Positions 28,001 to 56,587 of a stretch of DNA of 64,000 nucleotides are shown piece by piece. Both the position numbers and the translations under genes were made by a program. The stretch lies in sequence record MW879340.1. One strand, written 5' to 3'. The notes beneath the pieces are model-generated. The model was not told where the DNA came from. It made no database searches and saw only the letters and a list, made by a program, of their open reading frames with translations. How positions within the stretch are numbered: the stretch's first letter is position 1; each line of letters begins with the position of its first letter.

Positions 28001-28056
28001 CAACAGGGGTAGGTGTGCCGTCGCAGGTTGGCGACTTCAAAGGTTGGACAACGTAA
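25039..28056 (+). CDS. Long tail-fibre-like virion protein, paralogue of 21558
   Basis: Start moved to ATG 25039 after an AGGAGG RBS; shares PGVSGSFEG/PDVSGSFEG, EVDGTL/EDDGTL and QEVKQGW/QEVEQGW with 21558. Confidence 0.65.
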   Translation: MSRYDAEGLEPGSWGEFFAALEHMTTRMQSSKFNSYELAVSLVAPLQANVIAQYNTAMTKLVSHTTNYTNAHDIDRDVLQLGLVDNVAVATLEQIADGGYGDLYITADGFSALAAKVFGDFGTVLHHQGINPISVYGDVSWLPPDVSGSFEGSGQANAGNAGSFSLIEDDGTLIGLRRGTNGTSQGLYYYYQSNAEDKIDAVGPVRMNLRYSPANRPAGFECLDTISSDVGCIVGIGFGHATYNGFVSLTNGTMDVSKHYTGYFNVATAFGDIPAYDTFSSACVVGNYVYIFIPMIAASWNYSGEVPDPYDFKVFRCPTSQIVAGGAVTWEAITSWNSTGLWGNTGVTPNIRITPSIISKTAANKPFILHENRSWTTTYSPVHSGRRTMCCVNPANPAQVRLVVYHTIWTSLANGTAVMPNMAFSMLINVTAKTAVAEDGASYIKHVSPNQNSVSLVSTSIMDDATKVTGFNYAGNWHPNTLVTARGYMLSRGSGNQPDENSRFLRAQITNFVNRYDALRMRNRVVRAINNAPDTIRVGSDFTNGSMNPRMLPGLYLMYNGTATSGSNQFSYGRAKRLQFIGSPTFNYGTINSGVLKGWAPNSTRVEFTTNITFNQAVFISRAASDGSLVADASVAYGPTTIVSSGTAINKDLTISGNFTWSATEGNNMAITIARQVLAKTTLYQYAWTMYVPQDTNMPVLMVISASTARDDAVGFRSCNILAELNYTGARSGNVTGYSLKRVVDSVIYDPMPGGAYLQYETMGGIQSYKCADGTYLMSIGCPPVLGTYGGQQGVIWYAAVRAGAKTLEDATVKRFNHGYYPTSANPSGFVHPSYGLCKMDYATNQANYNAILAVDVMANTYADYTAWVSKAKYVVGAQEVEQGWIVYFTADAPVFLAGREYTLPATSIDLRTINASPGNKTFYCYVRLTTAGIEYFITTDALAPTMTMMYIGKIVTITTQISTIEITKKIRVDTFELSPTHIGSGIPTGVGVPSQVGDFKGWTT

Positions 28057-28057
28057 A

Positions 28058-28111
28058 CGGCATAAGCAAGGCCTGGCCCTTCCCTTACGGGAGAGGCCAG
28101 TGCCTTTATGC
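28058..28111. terminator. Bidirectional terminator between convergent genes
   Basis: ctggcc-cttccc-ttac-gggaga-ggccag stem bracketed by CGGCATAA and TTATGC. Confidence 0.65.
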
Positions 28112-36884: not shown

Positions 36885-36919
36885 AGTCTTACATATACCG
36901 TCGATAATGTACACCCAAC

Positions 36920-36948
36920 GGCGAGGCTTCGGCCTCGCCCTTATGCCG
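36920..36948 (+). terminator. Hairpin terminator candidate
   Basis: ggcgaggc-ttcg-gcctcgcc followed by cttatgccg. Confidence 0.6.
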
Positions 36949-36965
36949 ATCTAAGGATAACTCGT

Positions 36966-40211: not shown

Positions 40212-40841
40212 GTGAAGCTGAGTGAATTAAAAGCCTACATTTACTGGGACTTTGACGACGTACTGGGTCGTACACACGCGCAGATGCTATACTTGCTGAA
40301 GTACATCTTCGGGTACGTTGCACCAGACGACATTTACTTAACTCCAGGTAACACTGACGGTCGGATGGCGTACATCCTCGACAACCCGACGTTCATGCGC
40401 ACTACCGGGTTTGACTATCGTGCGGTTGCTGCCTGGAAACGGATTCAGGAAATGTTCCCCAACATCGAGAATGGATTAGCCACGCACCGTGGTTACCATG
40501 CCGATGGTGAACCGCTTACGATGGCGTTGCTGGACGAGCACTGCTTTAAGTTTGACAGCTATCACTTTATCGATCCGGCGGTACACGGTAAAGACAAGAT
40601 GGCGTACCTGCGTGCGTTGCATGACCCTGACGACATTGTAATCCTGATTGATGACAACACGTTCTACGATCACGATCAGTACCCGAACTCGTTTACAGTG
40701 TTGATCGATAAACCCTGGAACCAACAGATCGCCCCCTCATCGGCTGGAATGCGTGTAGATACCTCTGGCATCTACGAAGCGGTGGAGGCACTGTTGTGTT
40801 TCGCCACCATAAAGGCACCATTCGATGAAAGAGCAGCCTAA
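40212..40841 (+). CDS. HAD-superfamily 5'(3')-deoxyribonucleotidase-like phosphatase
   Basis: Motif I YWDFDDVLG, ATHRG, motif IV ILIDD, LIDKPWN; GTG start with GAGG RBS. Confidence 0.8.
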   Translation: MKLSELKAYIYWDFDDVLGRTHAQMLYLLKYIFGYVAPDDIYLTPGNTDGRMAYILDNPTFMRTTGFDYRAVAAWKRIQEMFPNIENGLATHRGYHADGEPLTMALLDEHCFKFDSYHFIDPAVHGKDKMAYLRALHDPDDIVILIDDNTFYDHDQYPNSFTVLIDKPWNQQIAPSSAGMRVDTSGIYEAVEALLCFATIKAPFDERAA

Positions 40842-41268
40842 CGTAAAAATGTCGGTTGACATGGGTCGCGCATTCATGCTGGCCGAATACCCCTGGTATG
40901 ATACGGACATGTGTCGTTCTAGCCAGGGATTGATTATCCCGCACAACGATTGCCCGGCGGCAGAGAAGATCAAGTACACGCTGTGTCGTCACGCATTGAA
41001 CTGTTATGACAAGAACAGTAAGGTGTTGGACCACGATAGCGTGTTAGAGCTTCTCTGGTTCACGTACGGGTTTGTTCCTTGTGGTGTTGAACACAAAGGT
41101 GTCATCTACCGTATCCTGGTTGCATTGCGCGGTGCGTGCTGGATTGATAAGCCACCTATCGAGTTGGTTGATCCAGACTGCCCTGGTTACAAGCTGTTGT
41201 TTGAGCAGCTGATGCGTATTCGTGCTTCCGTACTTAACTTGCTTAGTCAAGAAAGACAAATGCGCTAA
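40825..41268 (+). CDS. Hypothetical protein
   Basis: 147-aa ORF overlapping the HAD gene end. Confidence 0.6.
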   Translation: MKEQPNVKMSVDMGRAFMLAEYPWYDTDMCRSSQGLIIPHNDCPAAEKIKYTLCRHALNCYDKNSKVLDHDSVLELLWFTYGFVPCGVEHKGVIYRILVALRGACWIDKPPIELVDPDCPGYKLLFEQLMRIRASVLNLLSQERQMR

Positions 41269-41304
41269 TACTTATGTCATTCATTCAATAAAAGAGATTG
41301 TATC

Positions 41305-41883
41305 ATGAACCACGTTTTCTTTTCTCGAGAGCATTTGCTGGTTGTGTATGTAGAAGGTGAACCGCATCCGAAACCGGAAGGGATGGGTGAAACTGCACTG
41401 CTGGATTTGACTAACTGGCCGTGTGACATCATGCCGATTAACGAAACCCAGTGCATGGTGTTCGCTGACCCTGGCTTCATGACCACCTTCGGTTCTGGCT
41501 TTACGCTGAACGGCGAACTGGTAACCGGTTCCCTGGTGTGGCGTGATCGCTTCCTGTATCGCTACAGCTACGAGAAGGAACTTGACCTGATCGGTGATTT
41601 CCCATCAGGCTGGCACAACCTGTCTCGTGACTTCTACGTCAACAAGCTTGAGAACGGTGAACTCTACGACGAGCTGATTGCAACTGCCAACCGTGCAGAC
41701 AACGTCAACGAAACCAAAGAGTACCAGGACCAGTTCGTTGCGCGTATGCTGCGTCTGTTCGTGAAGTACAACGTGCCGGCTCAGTTTGGTTACTGCATCA
41801 ACGTACGTAACGGCTGCATGTCCCGCGTCAACCGTGCACGTATGAAAGAGCTGGAAGAGAAAGCTCGTAACGCCAAAAACTAA
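41305..41883 (+). CDS. Hypothetical protein
   Basis: 192 aa with strong high-expression codon bias (ctg, ggt, aac); followed by a terminator. Confidence 0.7.
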   Translation: MNHVFFSREHLLVVYVEGEPHPKPEGMGETALLDLTNWPCDIMPINETQCMVFADPGFMTTFGSGFTLNGELVTGSLVWRDRFLYRYSYEKELDLIGDFPSGWHNLSRDFYVNKLENGELYDELIATANRADNVNETKEYQDQFVARMLRLFVKYNVPAQFGYCINVRNGCMSRVNRARMKELEEKARNAKN

Positions 41884-41893
41884 ATCATAATTG

Positions 41894-41934
41894 GATCGGT
41901 CTCCTGCTTCGGCGGGAGATTGATCTTTTTATGC
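41894..41934 (+). terminator. Rho-independent terminator
   Basis: gatcggtctcctgc-ttcg-gcgggagattgatc then ttttt-atgc. Confidence 0.75.
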
Positions 41935-41951
41935 TGCATTATTTTTCACAT

Positions 41952-41960
41952 CTACATTAC
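41952..41960 (+). promoter_or_regulatory. Early promoter motif CTACATTAC
   Basis: Just downstream of the terminator; followed by tccagtga. Confidence 0.65.
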
Positions 41961-42031
41961 TCCAGTGATACCTCGGTTATTCTGAACATAATCCCCTTAG
42001 AATATGAACCCCGTTTCAGCGGAGATTTAAC

Positions 42032-42325
42032 ATGTTAGAACATGCGATGTTGATTGTCGGTGTTAAGTTCATCGTCAGCTGTACCATTGTGTTAATTGCA
42101 GAACGTCAACAATCCAAACCGTATTATTACCTGTGTGAAATTATTCTCGGGAGTGCGGTCATTGCTGTAGTCCCATTACTGGGCCACGTAGCACTGTATT
42201 TCTTAACTGCATACAACCTACGTCAATACCCGTACGGAATTATCCGTGCATGGTTATGGCCTGTTGAATTGTATCGTTCAGCGTACAAGTATTTGTTTCG
42301 TCGTTACCCATTTCGTAAACTGTAA
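42032..42325 (+). CDS. Small membrane protein
   Basis: Hydrophobic segments; GGAG RBS; WLWP motif. Confidence 0.65.
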   Translation: MLEHAMLIVGVKFIVSCTIVLIAERQQSKPYYYLCEIILGSAVIAVVPLLGHVALYFLTAYNLRQYPYGIIRAWLWPVELYRSAYKYLFRRYPFRKL

Positions 42326-42334
42326 GGGAATCTC

Positions 42335-42883
42335 ATGTCACTCGTAGATAAGTTTAAAAACTGGAAGCCACAAAAGCAACGTGAACTGTTAGAGCAGCTG
42401 CTGATGATTCATGCCGGCACTGACGGTGCAACACTGCTTTATGGTAAGCCAGACACGGTTAACGTTGCCTGGCACGATTCAGCCGAAACCATCCACCGTG
42501 CGTATTGGGACCCCGTGTGCCAACGTGAACAGATTCCTTACGAGGAGTTGTTCTCACGCATGACACTGGAAACTGGTACGAATGGTGCCGGTGATACGGT
42601 TGGTAACACACCAGAGCAAGTGCTGTCGGGTATTCGTACACAGGGCTGCTGGGCGTTCGTGGATTATAATGCACGTACCCTTCATCTGTGGGTTGGTCCA
42701 ACGGCGGAGCAGGGGATGGTCATGCAAATGATCACCTCTGAACTCAGTCACCTGACACCTGATCGTTGGACCGATGATCAGTTAGAGGAACTGCGTGCTG
42801 AACAGTTTGGTTACGTCGGCAATATTGCATTGCAGATCTTTAACCAGGCCATGGAACAACGCGCTGCAAAACTGGAGGGCTAG
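42335..42883 (+). CDS. Hypothetical protein
   Basis: 182 aa; AAGGG RBS. Confidence 0.65.
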   Translation: MSLVDKFKNWKPQKQRELLEQLLMIHAGTDGATLLYGKPDTVNVAWHDSAETIHRAYWDPVCQREQIPYEELFSRMTLETGTNGAGDTVGNTPEQVLSGIRTQGCWAFVDYNARTLHLWVGPTAEQGMVMQMITSELSHLTPDRWTDDQLEELRAEQFGYVGNIALQIFNQAMEQRAAKLEG

Positions 42884-42884
42884 C

Positions 42885-43109
42885 ATGTGGTCGCCACTAT
42901 TCTATCTCTTATTGGGGTGGTTCATTTCGTCTGTCATGTTGCATTTCGGCGAGAGGCGGGGTATTCGTACGACGAATCCACGCGCTGAACTACCCGGCTT
43001 TATGTCGTGATGGGGGATCTTCTCCTACCCACTCAAAGCGATTGCCCGGACCATTTGGGCAGTCATCAGCTGGTTCTATGAACTGGCGTGGCGTATGGTA
43101 AAAGGATAA
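42885..43109 (+). pseudogene. Small membrane protein gene with an in-frame TGA at 43008-43010 (nonsense allele or readthrough)
   Basis: GGAGG RBS; MWSPLFYLLLGWFISSVMLHFGERRGIRTTNPRAELPGFMS*WGIFSYPLKAIARTIWAVISWFYELAWRMVKG*; the post-TGA frame stays protein-like and ends 6 nt before the next start. Confidence 0.55.
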
Positions 43110-43115
43110 TAATAA

Positions 43116-44222
43116 ATGTCGGCAAGCTATCTGCTGATTGTCTTTATTCCAGCGATGCTGTGGGTGTTGGTCAGCAAACTCATCTTCAGAAAAACGATTA
43201 CCATGATGGAGTGGTGCATCCAGTGTGGTGCGCTTGTCGTGGTGTCGTTACTGATATGGGGGATTATCGCGATGGGAAGCCTCACGATGTCGTATGACAC
43301 GGAGGTGTTGAATGGCTACATCACCAGCAAAGAGTCTGTGCGGGTTACTTGTACGCACGAACACAAATGTGGTGAAACGTGCCGTAAGGGTGATGACGGT
43401 AAACTGCACTGCAAGCCTAAGTACTGCAAAGACCATGCTTACGACGTAGACTGGGACGTGCATTCGACGGTAGGGTCGTTTACCATTGATCGTTTGGACA
43501 GGCGTGGTCTGCAAGAACCGCCTCGCTGGACAAACGTAGTGATTGGTGAACCGGCGGCAAGGGAGTCTTATGCACAGAACTACATGCTGCTGCAAGAAGG
43601 CCACTTCAACACGTCTGATTCGATTATCTCGAAGTACCTGAATCAGATCCCTAAGTACCCGAGCACGTTTGACTACTACCGCTACAACCGCGTCATCAAC
43701 CAAACGACAACGGACTACGGCTGGATCAATACCTACCTGAACGATCAACTCCGTCAGATGGGTAAAGAGAAGCAGTTGAACGTCATCGTAGTAATCACGG
43801 ACAAACCGTACGATTATTATACGGCGATACGGCAAGAGTGGCAGGGTACCAAACGCAACGACGTCCAGTTGTACTTTGGCTTAGACGCAGACGGTAACAT
43901 CGTCTGGTTCAAAGCTGACTCGTTTGCTGATGGTCAATCCAATGCGACCATGCTGGAGTCTCTGCGTATTCCGACCCTGGATGCGAAGATTACTCCGGAG
44001 CTGATTAACGAACAGCTCTTGATCATCAAAGAGAAGTTTGTGCGTCTGCCAAATGAAAAATTGGAATACCTGAAAGATCAATGGTCGCCATCCATTGGCT
44101 TCATTACGTTCCTGACCATCCTTAACCTCCTTGTGGCTATCGGTATTAGTTATTGGCTACACAAAGATGACCTCGGAGAGTTTAAGTTCTTAAACAAAAA
44201 TAAATCACGCAGTTACTATTAA
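43116..44222 (+). CDS. Multi-pass membrane protein with large periplasmic domain (TPM-like C-terminal part)
   Basis: Two N-terminal TMDs, Cys-rich insert, LNVIVVITD...W.GTKRND..LYFG block, C-terminal TMD. Confidence 0.7.
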   Translation: MSASYLLIVFIPAMLWVLVSKLIFRKTITMMEWCIQCGALVVVSLLIWGIIAMGSLTMSYDTEVLNGYITSKESVRVTCTHEHKCGETCRKGDDGKLHCKPKYCKDHAYDVDWDVHSTVGSFTIDRLDRRGLQEPPRWTNVVIGEPAARESYAQNYMLLQEGHFNTSDSIISKYLNQIPKYPSTFDYYRYNRVINQTTTDYGWINTYLNDQLRQMGKEKQLNVIVVITDKPYDYYTAIRQEWQGTKRNDVQLYFGLDADGNIVWFKADSFADGQSNATMLESLRIPTLDAKITPELINEQLLIIKEKFVRLPNEKLEYLKDQWSPSIGFITFLTILNLLVAIGISYWLHKDDLGEFKFLNKNKSRSYY

Positions 44223-44839
44223 TGGAGAACAACATGAGTTACGTTGAACAGCAGCAGCAAAAGAAAAAGATGGGTGCCGGTGTTATTGTGGCGATCGTCT
44301 TTGGCATCATCTTTGCGCTGGGTGCTCTGGTAGTGGGTATTGGGGTAATGGCTTACGTCGGCGCCGCTAACAAAGGTAACCAGATGGAAAACTCCATCGA
44401 CCAACTGCGTCAAAACTCAGCATCAAACCTGAGTAACTTGACTCAGAGCATCCAGGAACAAGCCCAGGTTCCTGAGATGGCCAAAGACCATCTGAAAGAA
44501 ATCATTGAAGCACAGATGTCTGGGCGCTATGGTAAGGATGGTTCGAAAGCGGTGTTCCAGTTCCTGAAAGAACAGAACCTGCAAGTTGACCAACGTATGT
44601 ACCTGAACATCCAGGCTACAATGGCCGGTGGACGTAAAGAGTTTGAAATCACTCAGAACCGTCTCATGTCCCAATGCACCGCGTATAAGAATGAGATCGG
44701 TAACGTGTGGTCTGGCTTCTGGATGCGTTTAGCCGGCTACCCTAAGATTGATGTTAAAACCGTTTGTCGTGCAGTAACGGACAGCAAAACCGATGCGGCA
44801 TTCGAAACCGGTCAGCAGACTAAAATCAGTCTGAAGTAA
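44222..44839 (+). CDS. Single-TMD helical protein (LemA-like)
   Basis: KKK plus hydrophobic TMD, helical body, WSGFWMRLAGYP near the C-terminus; TAATG coupling. Confidence 0.6.
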   Translation: MENNMSYVEQQQQKKKMGAGVIVAIVFGIIFALGALVVGIGVMAYVGAANKGNQMENSIDQLRQNSASNLSNLTQSIQEQAQVPEMAKDHLKEIIEAQMSGRYGKDGSKAVFQFLKEQNLQVDQRMYLNIQATMAGGRKEFEITQNRLMSQCTAYKNEIGNVWSGFWMRLAGYPKIDVKTVCRAVTDSKTDAAFETGQQTKISLK

Positions 44840-44868
44840 TTAAAATAAGAAAGTAGTGCGCTAAACAA

Positions 44869-44892
44869 GGGAGGGCTTCGGCCCTCTCTTTA
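44869..44892 (+). terminator. Hairpin terminator
   Basis: gggagggc-ttcg-gccctctc followed by tttt. Confidence 0.7.
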
Positions 44893-44933
44893 TAACCAAA
44901 TACCAAATTTAACTTGTTGGAGTAATAAAGATC

Positions 44934-46442
44934 ATGGCTAATAACTATCTGGCACTCGTAGAACATTGCACCCACCTGATCAACAACCAGCCTGGTGGAA
45001 TCACCTGGTCACGTTTGCTAGAGCGTGTTAACTCGTTAAATGGCGCAAGCAAGCGCGAAAAGACCCAAGTATTTACCTACCTGAAAAAGAGACCTACTAT
45101 TTGGAACAATAACGCTGACGACATGTCAGACACCTTATTTATGGCCGGCACAGAAGTGTCAGCAAGTGAATTAGCCGAAACCAACACGACGACGGTTTCT
45201 GCTAAAGCCACTGAACGTAAAGAACGTTTGAAGAAGTTTGAAAAGATCAACACGGACAAAACCATCAAGGCGGTTGCGCATCCAACCCCAACCCCTGCCC
45301 GCACTGTTGCCAAGGTCACCCGCATGCCAACTGCTAAAACTGGTATTATCTTTGGAGATAACCACTTGATCGATGAAACCGATGTGATAGCCGAAATGGC
45401 GTGGCACGTATACGAGTCCGGTGAACACGGCATGACCATCAGCTCACTGCGCATGTCTGTTCCAGAGTTCTCTGAATGCAGCGACCCAGACCGCGCGTAT
45501 CTGTTGGTACAGATGCGTCAACGTTTTGGTATCGGGTACTACGAGAAAGAAACCATCGGTGACCGTGTCATCAAGGTGCTGGCCAAACGTACGGGGAGCG
45601 ATTACCGCATTAACCGCGGTGACTGGTTTGTGAAGATGGGCCGTGAGTCGTTCAAACGCCCTGACACCAATCTGGTTGAGCTTCGTCCGCAGGTAGCCAC
45701 CTTTGGTAGCGTGGGCGGTAACTCACTGGCAGACCAGCTGTCTAAACTGAATGCATCGGAACTGTTCAATAAGAACGCCGGCGCAGTGCAGGACGAGTTC
45801 GACGAGGACGAAGACGACGAAGGTATGGAGATGGATGGTAAGCTTGACCAGAATAAAATGGTTAAGACTATTCTTGCCGCGGATATCCCAGCTACCATGG
45901 CACACGTAACGGCGAGTAAGGCAACCGACACGATCACCAGTGTTATTAAGTCAGACGGTAAAGTTGAACCGTTGCCACCGTTGGCTAAACCGTCTCGTGA
46001 CTTTGTGCGTAACTGGGGTAATCGCCGTCCACAGCCGGAGCAGGCTGCTGTATCAGTGCCGGCTGCTAAGCCTGGTATCTCTGGTCATTCAGGTTTCACT
46101 GAGATTCCTAAAGACCTGCTGCCGAAGACCTTCACGCAAGCGCATGATGAAACCACCGCTAAGCCGGCTGTAATGCCTTCTGTCGCACCGAAAGCCGAAC
46201 CTCAGGCAACCACAGTGTCGCAGCAGGATATCGCTCAGACGGCTGATGTGTTGCGTCTGGTGGCGGCGCAGCTGGAAGCTCACACGCAGACCAACACGGC
46301 ACTGCAAGAGAAGAAGGCGCGTTTCGATGTATTGATGCGTATGGCGCGTGAAAGCTCAGTGCAGATTCAAACAGCACTGGACTCTCACAACGACCTGTTG
46401 GACGAACTGCAACGTGCAGCTAACGACCTGACTTCACTCTAA
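44934..46442 (+). CDS. Hypothetical protein with possible winged-helix domains and C-terminal coiled coil
   Basis: GGITWSRLLERV and HGMTISSLRMSV segments; low-complexity linker; coiled-coil end. Confidence 0.65.
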   Translation: MANNYLALVEHCTHLINNQPGGITWSRLLERVNSLNGASKREKTQVFTYLKKRPTIWNNNADDMSDTLFMAGTEVSASELAETNTTTVSAKATERKERLKKFEKINTDKTIKAVAHPTPTPARTVAKVTRMPTAKTGIIFGDNHLIDETDVIAEMAWHVYESGEHGMTISSLRMSVPEFSECSDPDRAYLLVQMRQRFGIGYYEKETIGDRVIKVLAKRTGSDYRINRGDWFVKMGRESFKRPDTNLVELRPQVATFGSVGGNSLADQLSKLNASELFNKNAGAVQDEFDEDEDDEGMEMDGKLDQNKMVKTILAADIPATMAHVTASKATDTITSVIKSDGKVEPLPPLAKPSRDFVRNWGNRRPQPEQAAVSVPAAKPGISGHSGFTEIPKDLLPKTFTQAHDETTAKPAVMPSVAPKAEPQATTVSQQDIAQTADVLRLVAAQLEAHTQTNTALQEKKARFDVLMRMARESSVQIQTALDSHNDLLDELQRAANDLTSL

Positions 46443-47239
46443 TGGGAGCTGTCATGATTAACCCTGCACACGTTGGAACTCCAGACCCTAAGATGCTGAC
46501 TTTGTTGGCAGACTTACTGGAAGAGCAGTTTGGCGTAAGTGAACGTGCAAAGCAGGCATCCGCAACACTGGATCGTTTATGTGTTGAACTTGAGGAGTCT
46601 AAACAACTCCTCAATAAACTCTGGACAGAACGTGAAGTCATTATGGCGGAACTGTTTGCCCTGAGTGAAGAGATGTCGGCCTTGTTAACGGAAGAGAATC
46701 AACTCAATACATTCTCCAGTGAAATTATCATTGATAACATCATTGTGGAAATTGAGATTCAATTCCGTGTCGTAACACGCAACGGGAACCCGGGTCGTGC
46801 GATTGATGCCATTGCTATTAAGCAAGGTAAAGAACGCGTAGACATCGTTTCCCAGAACAGCACAACGCTTGTGGTGTATGAAGACAAAGAGCTGATCATG
46901 GATACTGCGATCAACTCTCTGGGCGGAAGCACTATGGAAGATGCGTTGCGTTTCGTCATGACTGCCGTTGAGCGCTGGACGTTAGAACATCGTCACGATA
47001 ACCACTTTGACTTGGTTATCAAGTTGCTGATCAAATGTCAAGTCATTATCCATCCGATTGAGAAGGTGGTCAACCCAACACCTGCTCCGGTCGAACCTGA
47101 ATCTGAAACTCAAAGCACTCGTGCACCCCACACCCGTACTTACATACCACGCGGAAAAACGTTCTGGCGCGAAGGTTATTATCGCACCAGCTGTAACGGC
47201 GTGCGCCATTGGGTTGAAGGTCACGAATACACTCGCTAA
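46442..47239 (+). CDS. Hypothetical coiled-coil protein with basic C-terminal motif
   Basis: TAATG coupling; C-terminal RGKTFWREGYYR...HWVEGH. Confidence 0.65.
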   Translation: MGAVMINPAHVGTPDPKMLTLLADLLEEQFGVSERAKQASATLDRLCVELEESKQLLNKLWTEREVIMAELFALSEEMSALLTEENQLNTFSSEIIIDNIIVEIEIQFRVVTRNGNPGRAIDAIAIKQGKERVDIVSQNSTTLVVYEDKELIMDTAINSLGGSTMEDALRFVMTAVERWTLEHRHDNHFDLVIKLLIKCQVIIHPIEKVVNPTPAPVEPESETQSTRAPHTRTYIPRGKTFWREGYYRTSCNGVRHWVEGHEYTR

Positions 47240-47251
47240 TAAGGAAATGAA

Positions 47252-47416
47252 ATGGAAGAGAAGTTCTCCCTGAAAGATGTTGCTAAACTGCTGGGCATCA
47301 GCGTAAAGTCCATGAAGATTCGTGTGGCTACTGGTAAGTTCAAACAGCCAGATGAACGTAAAGCCGGCGCGCTGTACTGGACACGCGAATCGCTGTCCGA
47401 CGTCCTGCCTAAGTAA
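47252..47416 (+). CDS. AlpA/excisionase-like HTH DNA-binding protein (54 aa; missing from the ORF track)
   Basis: MEEKFSLKDVAKLLGISVKSMKIRVATGKFKQPDERKAGALYWTRESLSDVLPK; AAGGA RBS; followed by a terminator. Confidence 0.8.
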   Translation: MEEKFSLKDVAKLLGISVKSMKIRVATGKFKQPDERKAGALYWTRESLSDVLPK

Positions 47417-47427
47417 GCGGCATAACG

Positions 47428-47460
47428 GTAGGGGCTTCGGCCCCTACTGCTTTCTTTTTT
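47428..47460 (+). terminator. Rho-independent terminator
   Basis: gtaggggc-ttcg-gcccctac then a T-rich tract. Confidence 0.8.
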
Positions 47461-47474
47461 ATTTGTTTTGAAGC

Positions 47475-47483
47475 CTACATTAC
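47475..47483 (+). promoter_or_regulatory. Early promoter motif CTACATTAC
   Basis: Intergenic, after the terminator, upstream of 47526. Confidence 0.65.
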
Positions 47484-47525
47484 TAAGATGGCATAGACAA
47501 CTTAATTTAAAAAGGAACACTTGAC

Positions 47526-49271
47526 ATGTCCGAGCACGTAATTGATTTACTGAACGATGACGAAGAAGTAGAAATCAAACCCGTCGTTATCTATTCCCCT
47601 AAAGTTGCCAGCTCATTAATGTTGGGCTGGACCAGCGAGGCCTTCGGTAAAACCTTCCACGCTACAATGGATCTAGGTCGTTATCTGTCGTCTATCTGGC
47701 AGACACATCCAGACGGGTTTCGTTACATCAACGTGAAAGGCATTAAGCTTTCACAGCGTATCAGCGATGACGCCATCCTGAACGGTGAACTGACGCTGGA
47801 CATGGTTTACCGTGAAGGTGAATTTACGGTGAACAAGGCGGTGTTTGCTAACAACAGCTTTGAACCGGCTGACCCAATGGTCTACACCACGTTTGATCGT
47901 ATCGATGAAATGGTGGTTGAATCCATTACCGTTGATAAGCAACATGTGGTGGTCACCGGTAACAAACCAGCTGAGCAGTGGAACGCACCATCACCAACAC
48001 CGTCGGTGCTGCGCCGTATCACCATGCGCTACCTCACCGAGAAGAACCGTCCGCGTGAAATCATCTTCGACGTACCGCCTCATCGTGGGATGCTGCGTCG
48101 TGTATCTGATGGTCGTTTACATCTGGACATGGAAAACGTACGTGTGGAAAACCACCTGTATGATGAAGCTGGTTTGAAGCTGACCAACCAGCATCTGGAT
48201 GTGGGTGTAACACTGTCCGTGTCATACGTCAACAACGAGCCGGTGCTGGGTGAAGTGTTGGTCATCAATCCTAAGCTGACTGTTGATGGGCAAGAGCTTC
48301 GTCGTGGCTGGTTTGGTTACATCAGTTCACTGCATTTCGATAACGGTCGTAAGGTCGACGTTGATATGCCTGAGAACTACGAACTGCATCCGTTTGTGTA
48401 CCTGGAAGGTATGAACCACCATCCGGAACACATGGGTCACTGGGTACCGTTCAACGGCTGGCGCATGAAAGACCGCTATGACCTGCGTCTGCACAACGGT
48501 GAAGAGCACAAGTATTATTATCCGAATGCATGTGCCTGGTCGAAAATGGGTGAACACGAAGGTCCTGCTCGTCTTGAAGACAAAGATGTTGCCTTTGTAC
48601 GCCAAGTGCCGGATGAAGAATGTCACGAACAGTTCTTCTTCTCTGGCGAAGAACGTGTCAAGCGTAACCTTTCAATGTTCGGTGATGCTGTGCCAGATGT
48701 CTACGTACTGCCAGATGGTTCGGTGCAGTTCAAGATCCGTCACCGTCGTATGTTTGCTGACTCGCAGATTGTGGCTGATGTATCACCGTCTGACATGTTC
48801 CGTCATACCAGCACGATCCTCGGTCACGGTGACTTTACATTAACCGAAGTTCTGCACGTACCGTTCCGTGTCGATACACCGCTGTTTAAAGCCGCTGTAC
48901 GCTATCTTAAAGGCCAGCTGGAAGACAAGCAGTACACTGGCTTCAGTTTGGCTGAACACAGCGAACACGGCTATGTAGGGACGCTCAATGGTGAAAGCTT
49001 TGCCGACAATGAAGTTGACTGGGTTATCCGTCAGTTGATTCCTATTGCTCAGGCATTGCCGAAGAAACCAGAAGAGAAAGGTCCTGTCTTTGTTGACCCA
49101 TTCCGTACGGGCCGTGGTATCTCTGTTAATGGGAAACCTAACAAGAACGGTCGTATCTATCCAACGGCTGGCTCACTGCCTAAGAAGCCTAAGAACAACA
49201 AGGCTATCAAGAAGGCGGCTAAGAAGGAACGTACGCGTTTAATGAAGGAGGCTAAAGTTGCTAAAGCTTAA
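47526..49271 (+). CDS. Hypothetical protein with Lys-rich C-terminal tail
   Basis: 581 aa; AAGGA RBS. Confidence 0.75.
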   Translation: MSEHVIDLLNDDEEVEIKPVVIYSPKVASSLMLGWTSEAFGKTFHATMDLGRYLSSIWQTHPDGFRYINVKGIKLSQRISDDAILNGELTLDMVYREGEFTVNKAVFANNSFEPADPMVYTTFDRIDEMVVESITVDKQHVVVTGNKPAEQWNAPSPTPSVLRRITMRYLTEKNRPREIIFDVPPHRGMLRRVSDGRLHLDMENVRVENHLYDEAGLKLTNQHLDVGVTLSVSYVNNEPVLGEVLVINPKLTVDGQELRRGWFGYISSLHFDNGRKVDVDMPENYELHPFVYLEGMNHHPEHMGHWVPFNGWRMKDRYDLRLHNGEEHKYYYPNACAWSKMGEHEGPARLEDKDVAFVRQVPDEECHEQFFFSGEERVKRNLSMFGDAVPDVYVLPDGSVQFKIRHRRMFADSQIVADVSPSDMFRHTSTILGHGDFTLTEVLHVPFRVDTPLFKAAVRYLKGQLEDKQYTGFSLAEHSEHGYVGTLNGESFADNEVDWVIRQLIPIAQALPKKPEEKGPVFVDPFRTGRGISVNGKPNKNGRIYPTAGSLPKKPKNNKAIKKAAKKERTRLMKEAKVAKA

Positions 49272-49695
49272 GCCCTGTCCGTTGTGTGCGTCACCTGCTA
49301 AGGCTGGTAAGTACGCACTGGTCTTCTGGCACGTTAAGTGTACGCAGTGTATGTTGACGTTGAAAGACATGCACACGTCAGAAGAAGCTGTAACGGCAGC
49401 CTGGAACACGCGGATGTCCGAACAGGACAAACGTAATGAAGGTAAACGCTGGTCAAAGAAAGACTATTATGAAATCGTCAATCTGAAGACCGGCGAAGTG
49501 CTGAAACAGTTCCGTGAGTACGATGGGCCTGATGATGACATTGATGTTGACATTATCCCTATTCTGAAAGAGTACGGGTTTAACTGGTCGCATTATGATT
49601 TCGCACGTCGTGTCGGTACCGACATCTCGTTCAGCGGTAAGCACCGAATCCATACTGAGCTGCGTTACTACGACGACATCTCCTGGAGGGACTAA
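49258..49695 (+). CDS. Lar (restriction alleviation)-like zinc-ribbon protein
   Basis: LKPCPLCASPA...VKCTQC...EEAVTAAWNTR; TTG start after AAGGAGG. Confidence 0.65.
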   Translation: MLKLKPCPLCASPAKAGKYALVFWHVKCTQCMLTLKDMHTSEEAVTAAWNTRMSEQDKRNEGKRWSKKDYYEIVNLKTGEVLKQFREYDGPDDDIDVDIIPILKEYGFNWSHYDFARRVGTDISFSGKHRIHTELRYYDDISWRD

Positions 49696-49697
49696 CC

Positions 49698-49895
49698 GTG
49701 GGTATGTACAAGTTCTTCGTTGAAGGGCATTGTGTGGTCGAATGGAAAGAGGAAGATCCAATGCCGTCACGGGCTAAAGGTCAATGCCTCCAGACGTACG
49801 ACTTACCCATTGCCAAACGCGACGGGGTGGTAACGTATTATTCCAACGGTCATTGTCGACTGGAATACATTCCTGATAAAGAAGGTGAATCATGA
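49698..49895 (+). CDS. Small hypothetical protein
   Basis: GGAGGG RBS; GTG start; coupled on both sides. Confidence 0.55.
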   Translation: MGMYKFFVEGHCVVEWKEEDPMPSRAKGQCLQTYDLPIAKRDGVVTYYSNGHCRLEYIPDKEGES

Positions 49896-50377
49896 TTGAT
49901 GCATCTGCTCCAATTCTGGAAGTGAACAAAGCCTATCTCATTGGTGAATCCGAACGTGGGTTGTTGTACACCAATGACATGGTTGTGAAACCTGTAATCG
50001 CATTCATGAATCTGGGTGACTTAACTGAGTCTGTCAGTATCCGTGGTAACATGCAGGATGAACTCAGTTCGTTTCTGCATCACGTGCATGGCGGTCAAGT
50101 GCACGTCGGTGAGATCTTCATGTTCAACGGACGCACACGCATTGATTTGAACCCTGGCTTAGCCGCATTGTATCAAGCTGGTAATTGGCCGGGTCATGTG
50201 AATGGTGTCATTATGGCGTGTGCTCAAGGGTTTATGATGACGACTCTCAGTGTGGTGGCTGACAACTTTAGCCCGCCGCTACACAGACAGTTGCCGGTGA
50301 TTCGTTACTACCAGCTTGCGTGGGTCGATCGTAACGGCGACCACCATGCGTTCAGAGATATTATCGAAGTACAATAA
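49892..50377 (+). CDS. Hypothetical protein
   Basis: 161 aa; ATGA overlap. Confidence 0.65.
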   Translation: MIDASAPILEVNKAYLIGESERGLLYTNDMVVKPVIAFMNLGDLTESVSIRGNMQDELSSFLHHVHGGQVHVGEIFMFNGRTRIDLNPGLAALYQAGNWPGHVNGVIMACAQGFMMTTLSVVADNFSPPLHRQLPVIRYYQLAWVDRNGDHHAFRDIIEVQ

Positions 50378-50383
50378 ACCTTA

Positions 50384-50556
50384 TTGTATAGTAGGTAGTA
50401 CTCTGTGGTGATCAATCGTGAAAGCCACATCAGTAGGGGGTGGTCAACATCTCCCACGGGGAAGGGTTAGACTCCGGCAGCGACTGCACAGTCGTATGTG
50501 GCACTACCAAAGTCGGATGGCTCCGGTAATGCTGCGTCACGCTGTTTTCTATACAA
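50384..50556 (+). ncRNA. Candidate structured non-coding RNA
   Basis: Closed by ttgtatag/ctatacaa; several internal complementary helices; followed by a hairpin terminator; no RBS for the spurious GTG 50418. Strand inferred from the terminator. Confidence 0.5.
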
Positions 50557-50561
50557 CCTAT

Positions 50562-50592
50562 GGCTGGGGGAAACCCCAGCCCTTTTATGCCG
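50562..50592 (+). terminator. Hairpin terminator
   Basis: ggctgggg-gaaa-ccccagcc then ctttt-atgccg. Confidence 0.75.
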
Positions 50593-50609
50593 CTTTAAAG
50601 GAAACTCGT

Positions 50610-51242
50610 ATGAAAATCATTCAGAAAGAAGTACTGAATGCAATATTTACCAGCCTTACAGATGACACCAAAGTAACCGGTCAGCTGTTACCCTGGAACT
50701 GGTTGGGTGATGACATCATCCAGTCGTTAAACGCTGCACACGGGTTTAATTGGCCTCACAACCCTATGGCTGGTTACTGTTTACCATTCGCTCAGCCGAT
50801 GTCAGTAGCCTGTAGTAAAGAACAGTATTGGTTGTATTTCATCGCCAATTACCGTTACTACGATAACACGGCTGTTGACATAGCCAGTCTTGATTACAGC
50901 CTGTTCATTGAAGGCGAGACAGAGATTATGAACATCTGTCTGACGGGCTGGCAATTGGGGCGTTATCACGGGGAAACCAAAGCCCATGGCGAAGTATCAA
51001 AAGGCATTGTCGATTATGATGGTCGTGTAATTTTTGATCATTATAAAGCTATCCCACGACTGATGGAAAACTTCAGTCACCTGCTGATGACCCGTGAGCT
51101 GTTGCGTGGTGATCCGTACCTGGCTTGCTTTGCCACACATCACCACAATGAAGTGTACCGCAACTATCCGTATCCTAATGCGGTGCGTGAACTGGAACTT
51201 CCTACTAACCGTCTTTTGAAAGATATTGTCTGGGGTAAATAA
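50610..51242 (+). CDS. Hypothetical protein
   Basis: Start reassigned to ATG 50610 (MKIIQKEV) after AAGGA. Confidence 0.7.
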   Translation: MKIIQKEVLNAIFTSLTDDTKVTGQLLPWNWLGDDIIQSLNAAHGFNWPHNPMAGYCLPFAQPMSVACSKEQYWLYFIANYRYYDNTAVDIASLDYSLFIEGETEIMNICLTGWQLGRYHGETKAHGEVSKGIVDYDGRVIFDHYKAIPRLMENFSHLLMTRELLRGDPYLACFATHHHNEVYRNYPYPNAVRELELPTNRLLKDIVWGK

Positions 51243-51655
51243 TGGGACAAGCAATTGCGTTTCTAATCAAAGATGCCGACGAACCAGAAATGGCGGGTGT
51301 CTTAATTCAGACCGAACGTGAAATGGATTTCGACGACATTAAGCGTGATGTTGAACGCATCGTTAATTATGAAGATCTACAGGACAAGTTCTACATGCGT
51401 ATGGCTGACGACGAAACCACCTTCAGCTTTGTCGTGGTGGAAGGCGTGTCAATGCCGGTATTCATTTTCCACAACGTGTCACGTCGTAACTGGTCTCAGG
51501 CTGCCGCGGACGTTATCGCTAAAAACGCTGTCGGCTATTCCGTTGTGTTGTTCACACCAGAAGCCTTAGCGATCACTGTAAAGAACACCATTGGGCTTAT
51601 GGGGCTCGATGATGTCTGTGGTCCACTGCGCGGCATTCCTTACAAAGAAATGTAA
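51242..51655 (+). CDS. Hypothetical protein
   Basis: TAATG coupling. Confidence 0.65.
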   Translation: MGQAIAFLIKDADEPEMAGVLIQTEREMDFDDIKRDVERIVNYEDLQDKFYMRMADDETTFSFVVVEGVSMPVFIFHNVSRRNWSQAAADVIAKNAVGYSVVLFTPEALAITVKNTIGLMGLDDVCGPLRGIPYKEM

Positions 51656-51733
51656 AGGTTAACATAACTACACGAATGATTTGAATGGCAGTTGTGCCAT
51701 GTACCTTGTTCCATTTTCCAGTAAGGATACAAA

Positions 51734-52396
51734 ATGAAACATGTTTTAGTAGCGGACTTAGAAACTGGTAGTAAAGAGAAAGATGCCGCGGTGTTTGCCA
51801 TTGCAGCTGTTCTTTTTAATATCGAAGATCCCGCTTCTGTTGAAAGAATCAAACAGGCTTTTGCCGCTGGTGAAAGTCTTGACGATTATCTTTATACTAA
51901 ACTACACGTTGGTGATCAGTGGATGGATGGCCGTCGATTAGATGATGACACGCAGGGCTGGTGGCGTCAGGATCGACTCCGTATCCCACGCGAAGCACAG
52001 AAGGGTGGCGTTGGTGATTTCCGCGTTGCTCTGAAGGCTTTCGTTAAGTTGGTCAACGAACTGGTTAAACGTCACCAGGAAGAGTACGGCACTGATAGTA
52101 AAATCGTCGTGTACTTCCGTGATCGTCAGTTCGATGACAACATTCTCCAACATGCCGGGGAAATGTATAACGTTAAATTCCCTTATCAATTCAACCAGCG
52201 CCGCGACATAAGGACGTATATCGACACCAAACTCAACACCACGATCGGGTACATCCCGGACTTTAAACCGTTCCCTGATCTGCCACGTCATCACGCCATG
52301 ACAGACGTGCTACATGACGCCGCTTCTATGTGTGAAGCGAACCGCCGTTCTTTATTAACCACACGCAGTGCATTATCTGATGACACGTCACCGTAA
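51734..52396 (+). CDS. DEDD 3'-5' exonuclease (RNase AS / ExoVIII-like)
   Basis: LVADLETG, WWRQ, FDDNIL, RRDIRT and HHAMTD motifs. Confidence 0.8.
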   Translation: MKHVLVADLETGSKEKDAAVFAIAAVLFNIEDPASVERIKQAFAAGESLDDYLYTKLHVGDQWMDGRRLDDDTQGWWRQDRLRIPREAQKGGVGDFRVALKAFVKLVNELVKRHQEEYGTDSKIVVYFRDRQFDDNILQHAGEMYNVKFPYQFNQRRDIRTYIDTKLNTTIGYIPDFKPFPDLPRHHAMTDVLHDAASMCEANRRSLLTTRSALSDDTSP

Positions 52397-52572
52397 CAGG
52401 TGGCGACCTTTATGCCTTTCAGACCCGTCATCTGATATGGCATTTTTGTAGTTGTACGGCGCGTGTGTACGGAACAGCAGGACAGTCAAGACAACGGACC
52501 AGTCGATGGCGAACACTTAATCAGCTTAGCCACTGATTAGGTACAAGTAACTTTTGATTCTGGAGGATCATC

Positions 52573-53019
52573 ATGACTACCCTTAACGTTGCGAACTACT
52601 GGGCTGAAGTGAACAACCACGCTGTTGCTAATGCGTTTATCAGCAGCGATGTTAACCAGGTATTCCACCCATTCACCTTGCAGGTTATTTTACACGGGTT
52701 GAATATTAACGACATCAAACAACCAGGCGTTACGTACACGGGACGTTGTCTGGAATTACCCAACATTAATACCCACCTGTCTCCGATCAAGACTTTCATC
52801 TGTCGCTTTGATTTCCAGGGCACCAGAATGATCAATTCGCTGATCGTGAGTATCAAGATGGATCTTGGCACCAACCAGGTATCTGCTGTACCGTTACTGG
52901 GTTGGGATGTTTACGGTCGATCTATTGCGGAAGCATTGGATCTTCGTCAGGGGATGGAGATTTACGATTCGTACGGTAACATCAAAGCATGTGCTGACTG
53001 GCTGATGACAGCGGCATAA
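52573..53019 (+). CDS. Hypothetical protein
   Basis: GGAGG RBS; 148 aa. Confidence 0.7.
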   Translation: MTTLNVANYWAEVNNHAVANAFISSDVNQVFHPFTLQVILHGLNINDIKQPGVTYTGRCLELPNINTHLSPIKTFICRFDFQGTRMINSLIVSIKMDLGTNQVSAVPLLGWDVYGRSIAEALDLRQGMEIYDSYGNIKACADWLMTAA

Positions 53020-53024
53020 AGACC

Positions 53025-53072
53025 AGGTGGCGCTTGTGACGTTGTCACAGCGCCGTACCTATTTACTTTTTT
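53025..53072 (+). terminator. Hairpin terminator
   Basis: ggcgc-t-tgtgac-gtt-gtcaca-gcgcc stem followed by a T-rich run. Confidence 0.6.
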
Positions 53073-53074
53073 AA

Positions 53075-53527
53075 ATGGGAATCACACTAATGCTTAAGAT
53101 CTTCAACGAGTGTTTAAATGCGATCAACAAGTGCATTAAAGGTTTGCTCGAAGATGGTTTGTTAAGTGTAAATCAGGATTTCGGACAGACTATCGAACCC
53201 TGGCAACGTAAAGCGCTGAATGGGATCGTGGGGGATCACGAGGTAACCGATATCACCGGTTGTCATCTTCCACAGATCGACATTCACGGCATGCCCACTG
53301 ACGCGATGGTAGTCGGTTTCCAATACAAAAAGGATAACCGTCTATGCTGGGCGTCTGCATTAGTGGTTTCGAATGCGGCAACCCAATGGTCTAACGTCTC
53401 GGTACTGACTGCGGAAGAAGCGCAGGCTGGTCTGGACGAAGACAAGCAAGTGGTTGGCCTGAAGTACCCGTCCATTGGCCAAGTTGGTCAGATGGCGGCG
53501 GAAGCTTTACCTGCGCAAGCAGCATAA
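53075..53527 (+). CDS. Hypothetical protein
   Basis: 150 aa; start may be Met6. Confidence 0.65.
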   Translation: MGITLMLKIFNECLNAINKCIKGLLEDGLLSVNQDFGQTIEPWQRKALNGIVGDHEVTDITGCHLPQIDIHGMPTDAMVVGFQYKKDNRLCWASALVVSNAATQWSNVSVLTAEEAQAGLDEDKQVVGLKYPSIGQVGQMAAEALPAQAA

Positions 53528-53580
53528 TTAAAAAGACTACAAACAAGAATTCGTTTACTTTACTCAAAGGAAATTCGCCA

Positions 53581-54732
53581 ATGGACAGTTATCTCGTTTT
53601 AGGCCACCATATCCTGCGTGATGGTCGTCGACGTGGTGATCGTACTGGTACCGGAACCAAAAGCATCCGCAGCGCCAAACTGGTGTTCGACATGCAGAAA
53701 GGTTTCCCCCTACCCACGACCAAAGTTGTTCACCTGGAAAAGGTGTTCCGTGAACTGAAGTGGATTCTGATGGGCGAGTCAAACATGGCTTACCTGGAAG
53801 AACACGGCTGTGGCTTCATCTGGCGGAATTGGTCGTTAAGCGAGCCGGTAACACAAATGGTTCGTTATGCCGATTGGCGCCGTCTTAAGGTGTTGAAGGA
53901 TGACTACCCTGAGGCGTACGCGATCTGGCAATCAGAAGGGTATGAAAAGCGTTCGATTAAAGAAGGCCACGCCTTCATGGATAAGTATGAGGTTCCTACT
54001 CACTGGGAGAAAGTCTTAATCCCTGCGGGTGAAACCAATGCACCATATGGTCCAGCTTGGCGTAAGTGGCAAGGGCGTAATGGCGAAGAGATTGACCAGA
54101 TTCAATATCTGCTTGATACTCTGCGCACCAATCCGTTTAGCCGCCGTATTCTGTTATCTGCATGGGATCCCGCTAACCTGCCGGACGAGACCATCTCACC
54201 ACAGGAGAACATTAAAAACGGTAAGCCGTGTCTGACACCTTGCCACTGGGCTATTGAAATGTACACCGACGAAATGACGGTTGATGAACGTATCAACTGG
54301 TTGGTGGAACGCAACCCAATGGCCTGGGACAAATGGGTAGATGCGGGCAACTTAAAGCAGGATGAACTGTTGGATAAGTTCCTTGACGATCGTGGTGTGC
54401 CAAAGCATTTCCTCGATTTGAAATGGCACCAACGTTCAGTGGACTTCTGTGTTGGGCTTCCTTACAACATCGCCAGTTACGGTATGCTGTTGATGATGTT
54501 TGCCACCACGTTGAACATGGTTCCTCGTGAGCTGGAACTCGACGGCACCAACGTCCACATTTATAACAATCATGTTGAAGGCTTCGCCCAGCAATTCAGT
54601 CGTGCACCGCGTGAGCTGCCACGTCTTGAAGTGGTCAACAAGCGTGAACGACTGGAAGATTACGAGTGGGAGGACTTTGTCCTTAGCGGTTACAACCCGC
54701 ACCCATTTATTAAATACGACGTTTCCATCTAA
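53581..54732 (+). CDS. thyA: Thymidylate synthase with two insertions
   Basis: DRTGTGT, TTKVV, PYGPAW, RRILLSAW, catalytic PCH, QRSVD, PYNIASY (Asn, so dUMP-specific), HIYNNH. Confidence 0.95.
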   Translation: MDSYLVLGHHILRDGRRRGDRTGTGTKSIRSAKLVFDMQKGFPLPTTKVVHLEKVFRELKWILMGESNMAYLEEHGCGFIWRNWSLSEPVTQMVRYADWRRLKVLKDDYPEAYAIWQSEGYEKRSIKEGHAFMDKYEVPTHWEKVLIPAGETNAPYGPAWRKWQGRNGEEIDQIQYLLDTLRTNPFSRRILLSAWDPANLPDETISPQENIKNGKPCLTPCHWAIEMYTDEMTVDERINWLVERNPMAWDKWVDAGNLKQDELLDKFLDDRGVPKHFLDLKWHQRSVDFCVGLPYNIASYGMLLMMFATTLNMVPRELELDGTNVHIYNNHVEGFAQQFSRAPRELPRLEVVNKRERLEDYEWEDFVLSGYNPHPFIKYDVSI

Positions 54733-55428: not shown

Positions 55429-55456
55429 AACAAAATGCTATAGGTAGTGGTTGTAG

Positions 55457-55490
55457 GAGTGGGGGGTTTCGCCCCACTCTTTTATTTTTT
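55457..55490 (+). terminator. Rho-independent terminator
   Basis: gagtgggg...ccccactc then a T tract. Confidence 0.75.
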
Positions 55491-56542: not shown

Positions 56543-56587
56543 GATCTTCTCCTGCTTCGGCGGGAGAGGATCCCGCCTTTTATGCCG
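56543..56587 (+). terminator. Hairpin terminator
   Basis: tctcctgc-ttcg-gcgggaga (identical to 41900-41919) followed by tttt-atgccg. Confidence 0.7.

Follow-up and report, generated by a model that had tools for sequence, protein, structure and literature searches.

The stretch of DNA analysed here, a window of 64,000 nucleotides (nt) at its full length, belongs to the jumbo phage Erwinia phage pEa_SNUABM_48 (hereafter pEa48; MW879340, 294 kilobases (kb), same coordinates), and its sequence is also identical to that of pEa_SNUABM_37. Between two of its genes, gp50 and gp51, lies a gap of 232 nt (50378-50609), which carries one copy of the element that is the subject of this report, almost certainly a structured RNA encoded on the + strand. 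The gap extends from the stop codon of gp50 (TAA, 50375-50377) to the ATG of gp51 at 50610, and the genes around it are all on the + strand and all annotated as hypothetical in the GenBank record. A first-pass annotation, made from the DNA letters alone, had held that a spurious upstream GTG masks this gap in the track of open reading frames (ORFs), and both the gene ends and the homologues bear this out: the track shows a GTG-started ORF at 50418-51242, of which GenBank annotates 50610-51242 only, and since the in-frame extension upstream of the gp51 ATG, with 66 open codons in pEa48, is open for just 4 codons in five homologues, we regard it as spurious. Folded as RNA, the + strand of the element reaches -86.2 kcal/mol (z = -3.6), with none of 200 shuffled sequences folding as well; the same shuffle comparison gives z = -2.2 for the - strand.

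Comparison with known RNA families, a check that the first-pass annotation had named, returned nothing at the gathering score of Rfam 15, neither in the whole window nor in the corresponding loci of the Erwinia phages RAY and Joad, and no ribozyme, riboswitch, 6S, SRP, phage RNA or group I or II intron family of Rfam 15 matched (group I core RF00028 included). At a threshold of E<=10 over 50200-50800, two chance matches to small nucleolar RNAs were obtained, at 13-15 bits, and ARAGORN predicted no transfer RNA (tRNA) or transfer-messenger RNA gene in the window. No description of this RNA was found in Rfam 15 or in the searched literature. It is a previously undescribed RNA of ~180 bases, and the proposal of a discrete structured phage RNA outside the described families is upheld by these empty searches together with the conservation and covariation described below.

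Fourteen homologues were collected, all on the + strand: nine full and two partial copies from the clade of pEa48 and Salmonella phage SA002, plus those of RAY, AH06 and Ea35-70 (Agricanvirus). SA002 emerged from a blastn search of a phage collection as a single diverged copy, 80% identical and preceded by a different upstream gene; a DNA pattern scan located a homologue on a 273-kb contig of IMG/VR (L003), and a search with gp51 led to the Logan contigs L004-L011 and L014, each with a gap of ~230 nt before the gp51 homologue. The diverged copy of RAY, in a 212-nt gap between gp60 and gp61, was found by reading the syntenic region and, when used as a blastn query, matches 17 Agricanvirus records, with AH06 at 93% identity. 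Each genome record yields a single blastn location. A covariance model of the core (R1, 121 positions) scores 110-125 bits on 12 of 12 full copies and 51-54 bits on the two partial ones; it has a single match in the window, and its strongest match to the reverse strand is 16.6 bits. Three of the Logan contigs (L006, L007 and L010, from two samples) all start at the same base within hairpin D of the fold described below, which probably reflects a break in the assembly graph, at a point where related phages that occur together have the conserved 5' half of the RNA in common.

Beyond these relatives the searches came back empty or with matches that we rejected. R1 has no match in the syntenic 40-kb regions of Proteus phage 10, Klebsiella phage Eowyn and Erwinia phage Joad, all jumbo phages with a gp47-like gene, and the large gap before the exonuclease gene of Joad is, by eye, unrelated to the element. 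Of what the IMG/VR pattern scan returned, L003 is the sole true new homologue and L018 is RAY itself found again; L012, L019 and L020 are chance matches, the last two at 17 bits and to hairpin C only. A scan of JGI metagenomes gave a sole match, a chance terminator (L013), while scans of GTDB genomes gave none and then five chance matches in G+C-rich bacteria, the best of them at 21.6 bits and with broken stems. Escherichia coli genomes hold no match to the element, the gp51 protein has none in IMG/VR, and a search with the RAY gp60 protein recovers its own cluster only. The RNA family is narrow, comprising Agricanvirus, the pEa48/SA002 clade and metagenomic relatives.

The core of the fold is formed by three hairpins, C, D and E, with 25 pairs between them, which we assessed on a model-based alignment against two controls, 500 shuffles and slid pairings. 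Cells of the alignment pair in 95.3% of cases, compared to 85.5% in the shuffles and 25-44% when the pairings are slid; 12 of the 25 pairs have changed on both sides, compared to 7.7 in the shuffles (3 of 500 of which reach 12); and the covariation score of 0.406 is reached by none of the 500 shuffles (0.229), the slid pairings staying at or below 0.12. The test for covariation among homologues, also suggested in the first-pass annotation, thus reveals a conserved structured domain with compensated changes. Hairpin C (50457-50476, + strand) has a stem of 50457-50461/50472-50476, in which 96.7% of cells pair and which changes between clades from G-C to U-A and from G-U to G-C or A-U, so that CGGGG/CUCCG becomes CGGGU/ACCCG in RAY; its 10-nt loop RAGGGUUAGA (50462-50471) is invariant in 12 of 12 full sequences. 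Hairpin D (50480-50495, +; stem 50480-50485/50490-50495, loop GCAN) pairs in 97.1% of cells, with three of five modelled pairs changed on both sides. Hairpin E (50496-50537, +) is built in tiers (50496-50503/50530-50537, 50505-50508/50525-50528 and 50511-50514/50519-50522) below a variable tetraloop; 94.3% of the cells of its 15 modelled pairs do pair, eight of these pairs have changed on both sides, and two further compensated pairs appear in the middle tier when RAY is compared with AH06. Hairpins C-E contain many G-U pairs, which can pair on the + strand only; given the frequency of G-U pairs and the mere 16.6 bits of the best reverse-strand match, the structure belongs to the + strand RNA. 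We are highly confident that the element is a real, conserved and structured RNA.

The same data bear on the possibility that the gap is coding, as an N-terminal extension of gp51 or a small ORF, or that it is a DNA-level signal, which we find scarcely credible. The 66 open codons before gp51 in pEa48 would suit a coding role, as would the behaviour of one gene caller, which extended the L014 homologue to 236 amino acids, but the reading frame closes in five homologues as described, indels of 1, 2, 11 and 17 nt separate the copies, and substitutions track base pairs rather than codons. A DNA hairpin fits poorly with the G-U pairs and with the asymmetry between the strands.

Two further hairpins precede the core. 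Hairpin A (50404-50429, +; 50404-50409/50424-50429, inner pairs 50412-50414/50419-50421) pairs in 54 of 54 cells and is part of the RNAalifold consensus; it shows a G-C to A-U change at 50408/50425, one compensated pair, and a U-G to C-G change at 50409/50424. The RAY clade lacks it, which marks it as an optional module. Hairpin B (50436-50454, +; stem 50436-50442/50448-50454) contains GGGGGUGGUC and a CAUCUCC strand; 58 of its 63 cells pair, and it folds in all homologues, with energies of -4.8 to -14 kcal/mol. Insertions of 11-17 nt at its tip pair with themselves, such as GAGC-UUCG-GCUC in L008. In the pEa48 clade alone, RNAalifold proposes a competing fold between B and C, GGAG/CUCC, although the covariation contributed by RAY favours separate hairpins B and C at the level of sequence comparison. 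Tertiary pairings of the hairpin C loop with ACUCU (50400-50404) and with the UCUA of the tail were considered and dropped on inspection of the alignment, as both are broken in L005 and L009 and missing in other clades.

This architecture departs in part from the fold first proposed, a closed junction of several helices, in which long-range helices stack and a pseudoknot forms. Each complementary stretch quoted in that proposal does occur at its given position, and several correspond to the hairpins above: gggggtg/catctcc is hairpin B, cgact/agtcg is hairpin D (62 of 62 cells in the pEa48 clade), and tgtgg/ccaca, listed as an alternative pairing, is hairpin A; hairpins C and E had been missed. 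The long-range helices fare less well. The pairing gccacat/atgtggc is refuted by substitutions that break the helix and leave no more than 45 of 63 cells paired; the closing stem ttgtatag/ctatacaa is weak (57 of 68 cells), with no compensating changes and no counterpart in RAY; and the pseudoknot tccggc/gtcgga, with 48 of 54 cells paired, is disrupted in four lineages, shows no covariation and is uninformative. For ggtagt/actacc the picture is mixed: it is pairable in 54 of 54 cells and one A-U to U-A change is matched between clades, but it competes with hairpin E, as actacc is the 5' strand of the middle tier, which covaries independently. Enforcing it costs +3.5 to +16.6 kcal/mol, and the ggtagt segment is missing from six viable Agricanvirus phages; it is at most a transient or alternative pairing. 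The junction is therefore unsupported; what the homologues do support is up to five hairpins in a row (A-E), then a tail and a generic phage terminator.

The row is framed by a conserved 5' block and by the tail. The 5' block (50382-50403, +) consists of an AT-rich 10-mer, TATTGTATAG (50382-50391), and GGTAGT (50394-50399), hereafter segment 1; conservation begins sharply at this block in every homologue, whatever gene lies upstream, and TATT-N-TATAG is present in RAY too. The block may act as a promoter, a processing site or a single-stranded 5' arm. The sole other copy of TATTGTATAG in the window is at 19300 on the - strand, in a divergent intergenic region. The 3' tail (50538-50561, +), between hairpin E and the terminator, holds ctatacaa and ACCTAT and is conserved within the clade, measuring 24 nt in pEa48 and ~65 nt in RAY. 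Its ACCTAT can pair with 50391-50396: GUAGGU/ACCUAY is found in 53 of 53 cells, in columns that are nearly invariant (one G-C to G-U change), and the helix is absent in RAY.

Directly downstream stands the terminator hairpin (50562-50592, +), which the first-pass annotation had also recognised and which a terminator scan supports; it is composed of GGCTGGGG-GAAA-CCCCAGCC (50562-50581) followed by CTTTTATGCCG, so that the 3' end falls at a stem-loop plus TTAT terminator of the phage's own type. The gp51 leader (50593-50609, +) follows, with the ribosome-binding site AAGGA at 50598-50602 and ACTCGT right before the ATG. These parts recur across the window. TTATGCC is present in 20 copies where 6.3 are expected, a threefold excess, and by our own reading of the scan 11 of the 20 directly follow a G+C-rich intergenic hairpin, both sides of the convergent pair at 17195-17245 included. 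The whole cassette hairpin-TTATGCC-AAGGA-ACTCGT-ATG is found at the gene starts 5443, 36966 and 50610, the T of TATGCC lying 24 nt before the ATG in each (5419/5443, 36942/36966, 50586/50610), and RAY has the same arrangement. Because the terminator and leader are stereotyped across the genome, they do not constitute a dedicated expression platform, and, the 3' end being generic, the RNA proper (50382-50561) amounts to a module added between stop codon and cassette.

Cassettes of this kind (a G+C-rich hairpin, (C)TTTATGCC(G) and often AAGGA and ACTCGT) were seen at 5393-5442, 17204-17245 (both strands), 28059-28111 and 36919-36965, with further sites at 47419-47448, 52397-52416 and 56548-56586. 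The cassette resembles the common "stem-loop + TTAT" motif of phiKZ terminators (PMC10914365) and overlaps a motif like the phiKZ late promoter, TATG, at which transcription starts at the G (PMC4666361). Given that phiKZ terminators carry TTAT and the phiKZ late promoter is TATG, the cassette may both end one transcript and start the next. The ATG within TTATGCC opens a mini-ORF of three codons in pEa48 (50587-50598) and of eight codons, overlapping the gp51 ATG, in SA002; gp61 of RAY is annotated from this ATG (L015:8504) and its counterparts in Ea35-70 and AH06 from the next in-frame ATG after AAGGA, and the RAY start has probably been placed too early. A second intergenic region of 232 nt, at 42884-43115, folds better than its shuffles (z = -2.6) and contains a hairpin with TTTATG after it; it may be the site of another structured element.

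A promoter-like motif, TACATTAC or TATATTAC, is found in seven intergenic regions, and its nearest occurrence upstream of the RNA is at 47476, before gp47; a sigma-70 promoter scan gave no site upstream of the RNA. The occurrences of (C)TA(C/T)ATTA(C/G), at 29170, 34493, 41953, 47476, 56606, 57431 and 58089 (+), lie upstream of + strand genes and probably represent an AT-rich early promoter class of the phage.

The position of the RNA directly upstream of a terminator raises the possibility of a cis-acting leader, in which the fold, or a bound ligand, protein or phage RNA polymerase, would set the read-through of 50562-50592 into gp51, gp52 and the exoribonuclease gene, either as a riboswitch-like attenuator or as a put-like processive antiterminator. 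The gene block that follows reaches an Rv2179c-like exoribonuclease in both clades, and in phiKZ many terminators in 5' untranslated regions (UTRs) yield either short RNAs or read-through transcripts (PMC10914365). In every clade, segment 2 (CUACC, 50504-50508) has two possible partners, segment 1 (50394-50398) and segment 3 (50525-50528), and one substitution, A-U to U-A, is matched across the three. Set against this are the generic nature of the cassette, which stands at many genes, the energetic cost of the alternative pairing given above and the viability of the six phages with segment 1 deleted. On alignment inspection neither terminator arm has a complementary sequence that both clades conserve, the first downstream genes differ and are unrelated between clades, and no riboswitch family matches. 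We regard this explanation as possible, though doubtful.

The neighbourhood of the RNA is less conserved than the RNA itself. Within the clade, identity to pEa48 is 72-96% for the RNA, 58-78% for the gp51 gene and 65-79% for the exonuclease gene. The proteins encoded immediately beside the RNA in the RAY clade are unrelated to those of pEa48/SA002; the genes common to both clades nearby are a gp47-like gene upstream and, downstream, the Rv2179c-like 3'-5' exoribonuclease (1.1-1.2 kb away in both) and thymidylate synthase. The gene most variable in the block is gp51, and in L014 (2853-3085, compared with 50378-50612 of the window) the RNA is 96% identical when the adjacent gp51 has 63% identity in DNA and 50% in protein, a contrast that, from the sequences, points to either mosaic exchange at the RNA or a fast-evolving gp51. 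RAY encodes an RtcB-type "tRNA splicing ligase" (L015:489-1727) ~6.5 kb upstream of its RNA copy, and Pfam found no RtcB among the scanned pEa48 proteins of 40825-54729.

Whichever gene lies upstream, the RNA stands right after its stop codon: that of gp50, of a 291-amino-acid protein (SA002 gp50; 287-293 amino acids in relatives), of RAY gp60 or of an HNH gene. This constancy is what would be expected of a passive or semi-passive messenger RNA (mRNA) element, namely a structured 3' UTR or intercistronic spacer, without any function of its own, that protects the mRNA upstream against 3' exonucleases or marks an RNase processing site between two transcription units, and a similar 5' motif, TATAGGTAGT, precedes another terminator at 55439. 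Other genes of the genome, however, have the bare terminator cassette, and loops that are invariant across clades, together with conservation above that of the coding flanks, point to specific recognition more than to bulk structure; we consider a purely passive role unlikely. The motif at 55439-55490 begins 10 nt past a stop codon with the terminator hairpin directly after it, and was not found at the corresponding place in L003.

The HNH endonuclease gene lies exactly at the 5' edge of the RNA in Ea35-70 (L016:1915-2505), Simmy50, Special G, MadMel and Mortimer; in Desertfox the match is truncated in the same way, though the match table names no HNH gene there. The HNH gene takes the place of the conserved 5' block, ~25 nt including TATAGGTTGTAACTCAATGG, its stop codon falls within the GGTGATC of hairpin B, and B-E are intact. 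Such a placement might suggest that the RNA is a remnant or part of a mobile element, either a group I-like intron or the target or partner of a homing endonuclease, but we judge this very improbable: no intron family matches, no gene is split, the flanking ORFs being complete and different between clades, the insertion deletes ~25 nt with no looping out, and most homologues have no endonuclease nearby.

Hairpin B has a further property. Within 50434-50446, which covers its 5' strand and loop, lies an 11-nt complement of the 3' tail of 16S ribosomal RNA (rRNA), and across homologues the complement measures 10-13 nt, as in GAAGGAGGUGAUCA of SA002. When duplexes with GAUCACCUCCUUA were computed by RNAduplex, the best one fell at hairpin B in 12 of 12 homologues, at -15.7 to -22.5 kcal/mol, an energy reached by none of 300 shuffles in the pEa48 clade; hairpin B alone is weaker than this duplex. 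In the 64 kb of the window one other site is equally strong, at 27412-27429 (+; -19.7 kcal/mol), inside the coding region 25039-28056. By eye, no AUG, GUG or UUG at initiation distance after the complement is common to the aligned homologues, and neither a start codon nor an ORF consistently follows this extended complementarity. A 26-codon frame from an AUC after the Shine-Dalgarno-like element was rejected by eye, as it is open in pEa48 and SA002, stops after four codons in L005 and has radical substitutions.

In our tentative preference, which we would put somewhat short of an even chance, the element acts in trans, as a stable non-coding RNA that ends at the terminator and binds a partner; docking on the 30S subunit, counted within this reading, is by itself rather improbable. 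The region 50382-50592 (+) would then encode a discrete RNA made of hairpin A (optional), hairpins B, C, D and E, a short tail and the standard terminator. It might be transcribed as the 3' end of an upstream early operon, from the promoter-like TACATTAC at 47476, or from the TATTGTATAG block, and the transcript would end at the terminator and accumulate as a stable RNA of about 180-210 nt. Contact with the partner might be made by the invariant, exposed parts of the RNA: hairpin B and the loops of hairpins C (RAGGGUUAGA) and D (GCAN). As no conserved start codon follows the 10-13-nt complement of the 16S tail in hairpin B, free 30S subunits may be where the RNA docks; this could stabilise it in the manner of STAB-SD, a start-less Shine-Dalgarno sequence that binds 30S and stabilises RNA (PMC4113751), or could titrate or mark ribosomes.

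Several observations weigh against this reading and it should be treated with caution. The set of homologues is narrow (effective sequence number 1.68), so that some covariation counts register a single evolutionary event more than once. TACATTAC, the main promoter-like motif of the genome, is not found immediately upstream of the RNA; that a discrete species exists at all, where its 5' end lies and how abundant it is are what we infer from the sequence, and the RNA could be an untranslated stretch of a longer mRNA. No partner protein emerged; Pfam, PHROGs and NCBIfam assign no function or family to gp50, gp51 or gp52, and the structure predicted for gp51, although confident (predicted local distance difference test score of 83.7), has no relative in the PDB with a TM-score >0.22. 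As for the ribosome, the complementarity was noticed after the fact and is to be read as a hypothesis and not as a finding; it is partly explained by the need of the 5' strand to pair with the CAUCUCC strand of hairpin B, and in RAY and AH06 it is degraded, with ~1% of shuffles reaching its duplex energy.

Among described systems, the closest parallels to such a stable RNA are the short RNAs of phiKZ (Putzeys et al., 2024, PMC10914365), which likewise come from a jumbo phage with its own RNA polymerases, are intergenic and shorter than 250 nt, end at a conserved "stem-loop + TTAT(G)" terminator, are conserved among related phages and have no known function. No sequence homology to them was detected (blastn against the phage collection matched the pEa48/SA002 clade only), and they were defined from transcripts without covariation, whereas the present RNA was defined by covariation without transcripts. 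STAB-SD, in the cry3A 5' UTR of Bacillus thuringiensis (PMC4113751), shares the long complement of the 16S 3' end with no start codon after it, and there the binding of 30S protects the RNA; it is, however, a short unstructured 5' element in a Gram-positive host with RNase J1, whereas the present motif lies within a hairpin of a multi-hairpin RNA of enterobacterial phages and is a candidate only for 30S binding. Riboswitches and attenuators with an intrinsic terminator also have a conserved covarying domain followed by a terminator and a gene, with some alternative pairings, but the present RNA lacks a dedicated expression platform and a conserved antiterminator and matches no Rfam riboswitch model; its first downstream genes are unrelated between the clades, with the exoribonuclease gene common to both farther on. 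6S RNA is similarly long (~180 nt) and, as with the present RNA, a large cellular machine is its candidate partner. It folds into an extended rod around a central bubble, with the 5' and 3' ends providing the closure, whereas the present RNA is a row of hairpins whose closing stem is not conserved, and the Rfam 6S models do not match. Group I introns with a homing endonuclease imply an interrupted gene and the P3-P7 core of RF00028, neither of which is found here. Small RNAs derived from enterobacterial 3' UTRs, such as CpxQ, SroC and DapZ, are located right behind a stop codon and use the same terminator as the mRNA before them, as the present RNA does. They are short and Hfq-dependent with a single-stranded seed, unlike the present RNA, which is ~180 nt long and almost fully structured with a short U-tail (CUUUUAU).

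In nucleus-forming jumbo phages transcription takes place inside a protein shell and translation outside it, and their non-coding RNAs are little known. A bolder, speculative and improbable extension of the preferred reading is that of a ribosome-docking phage RNA, which would be exported from the phage nucleus and hold the 16S 3' tail with hairpin B, as an extended anti-anti-Shine-Dalgarno element, as the invariant C and D loops recruit a phage factor, so that host 30S subunits would be reprogrammed or sequestered in the course of infection; we know of no described phage RNA of this kind. What has been found is a covariation-supported RNA family common to two genera-level clades, modular and better conserved than the neighbouring genes, and which stayed intact when a homing endonuclease landed at its edge. 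It provides a defined target in phages such as RAY, already a model in cell biology. If the leader explanation were to hold, this phage family would have its first defined structured regulatory leader, and if the complement of the 16S tail is functional, the RNA would represent an RNA-based action of a phage on ribosomes.

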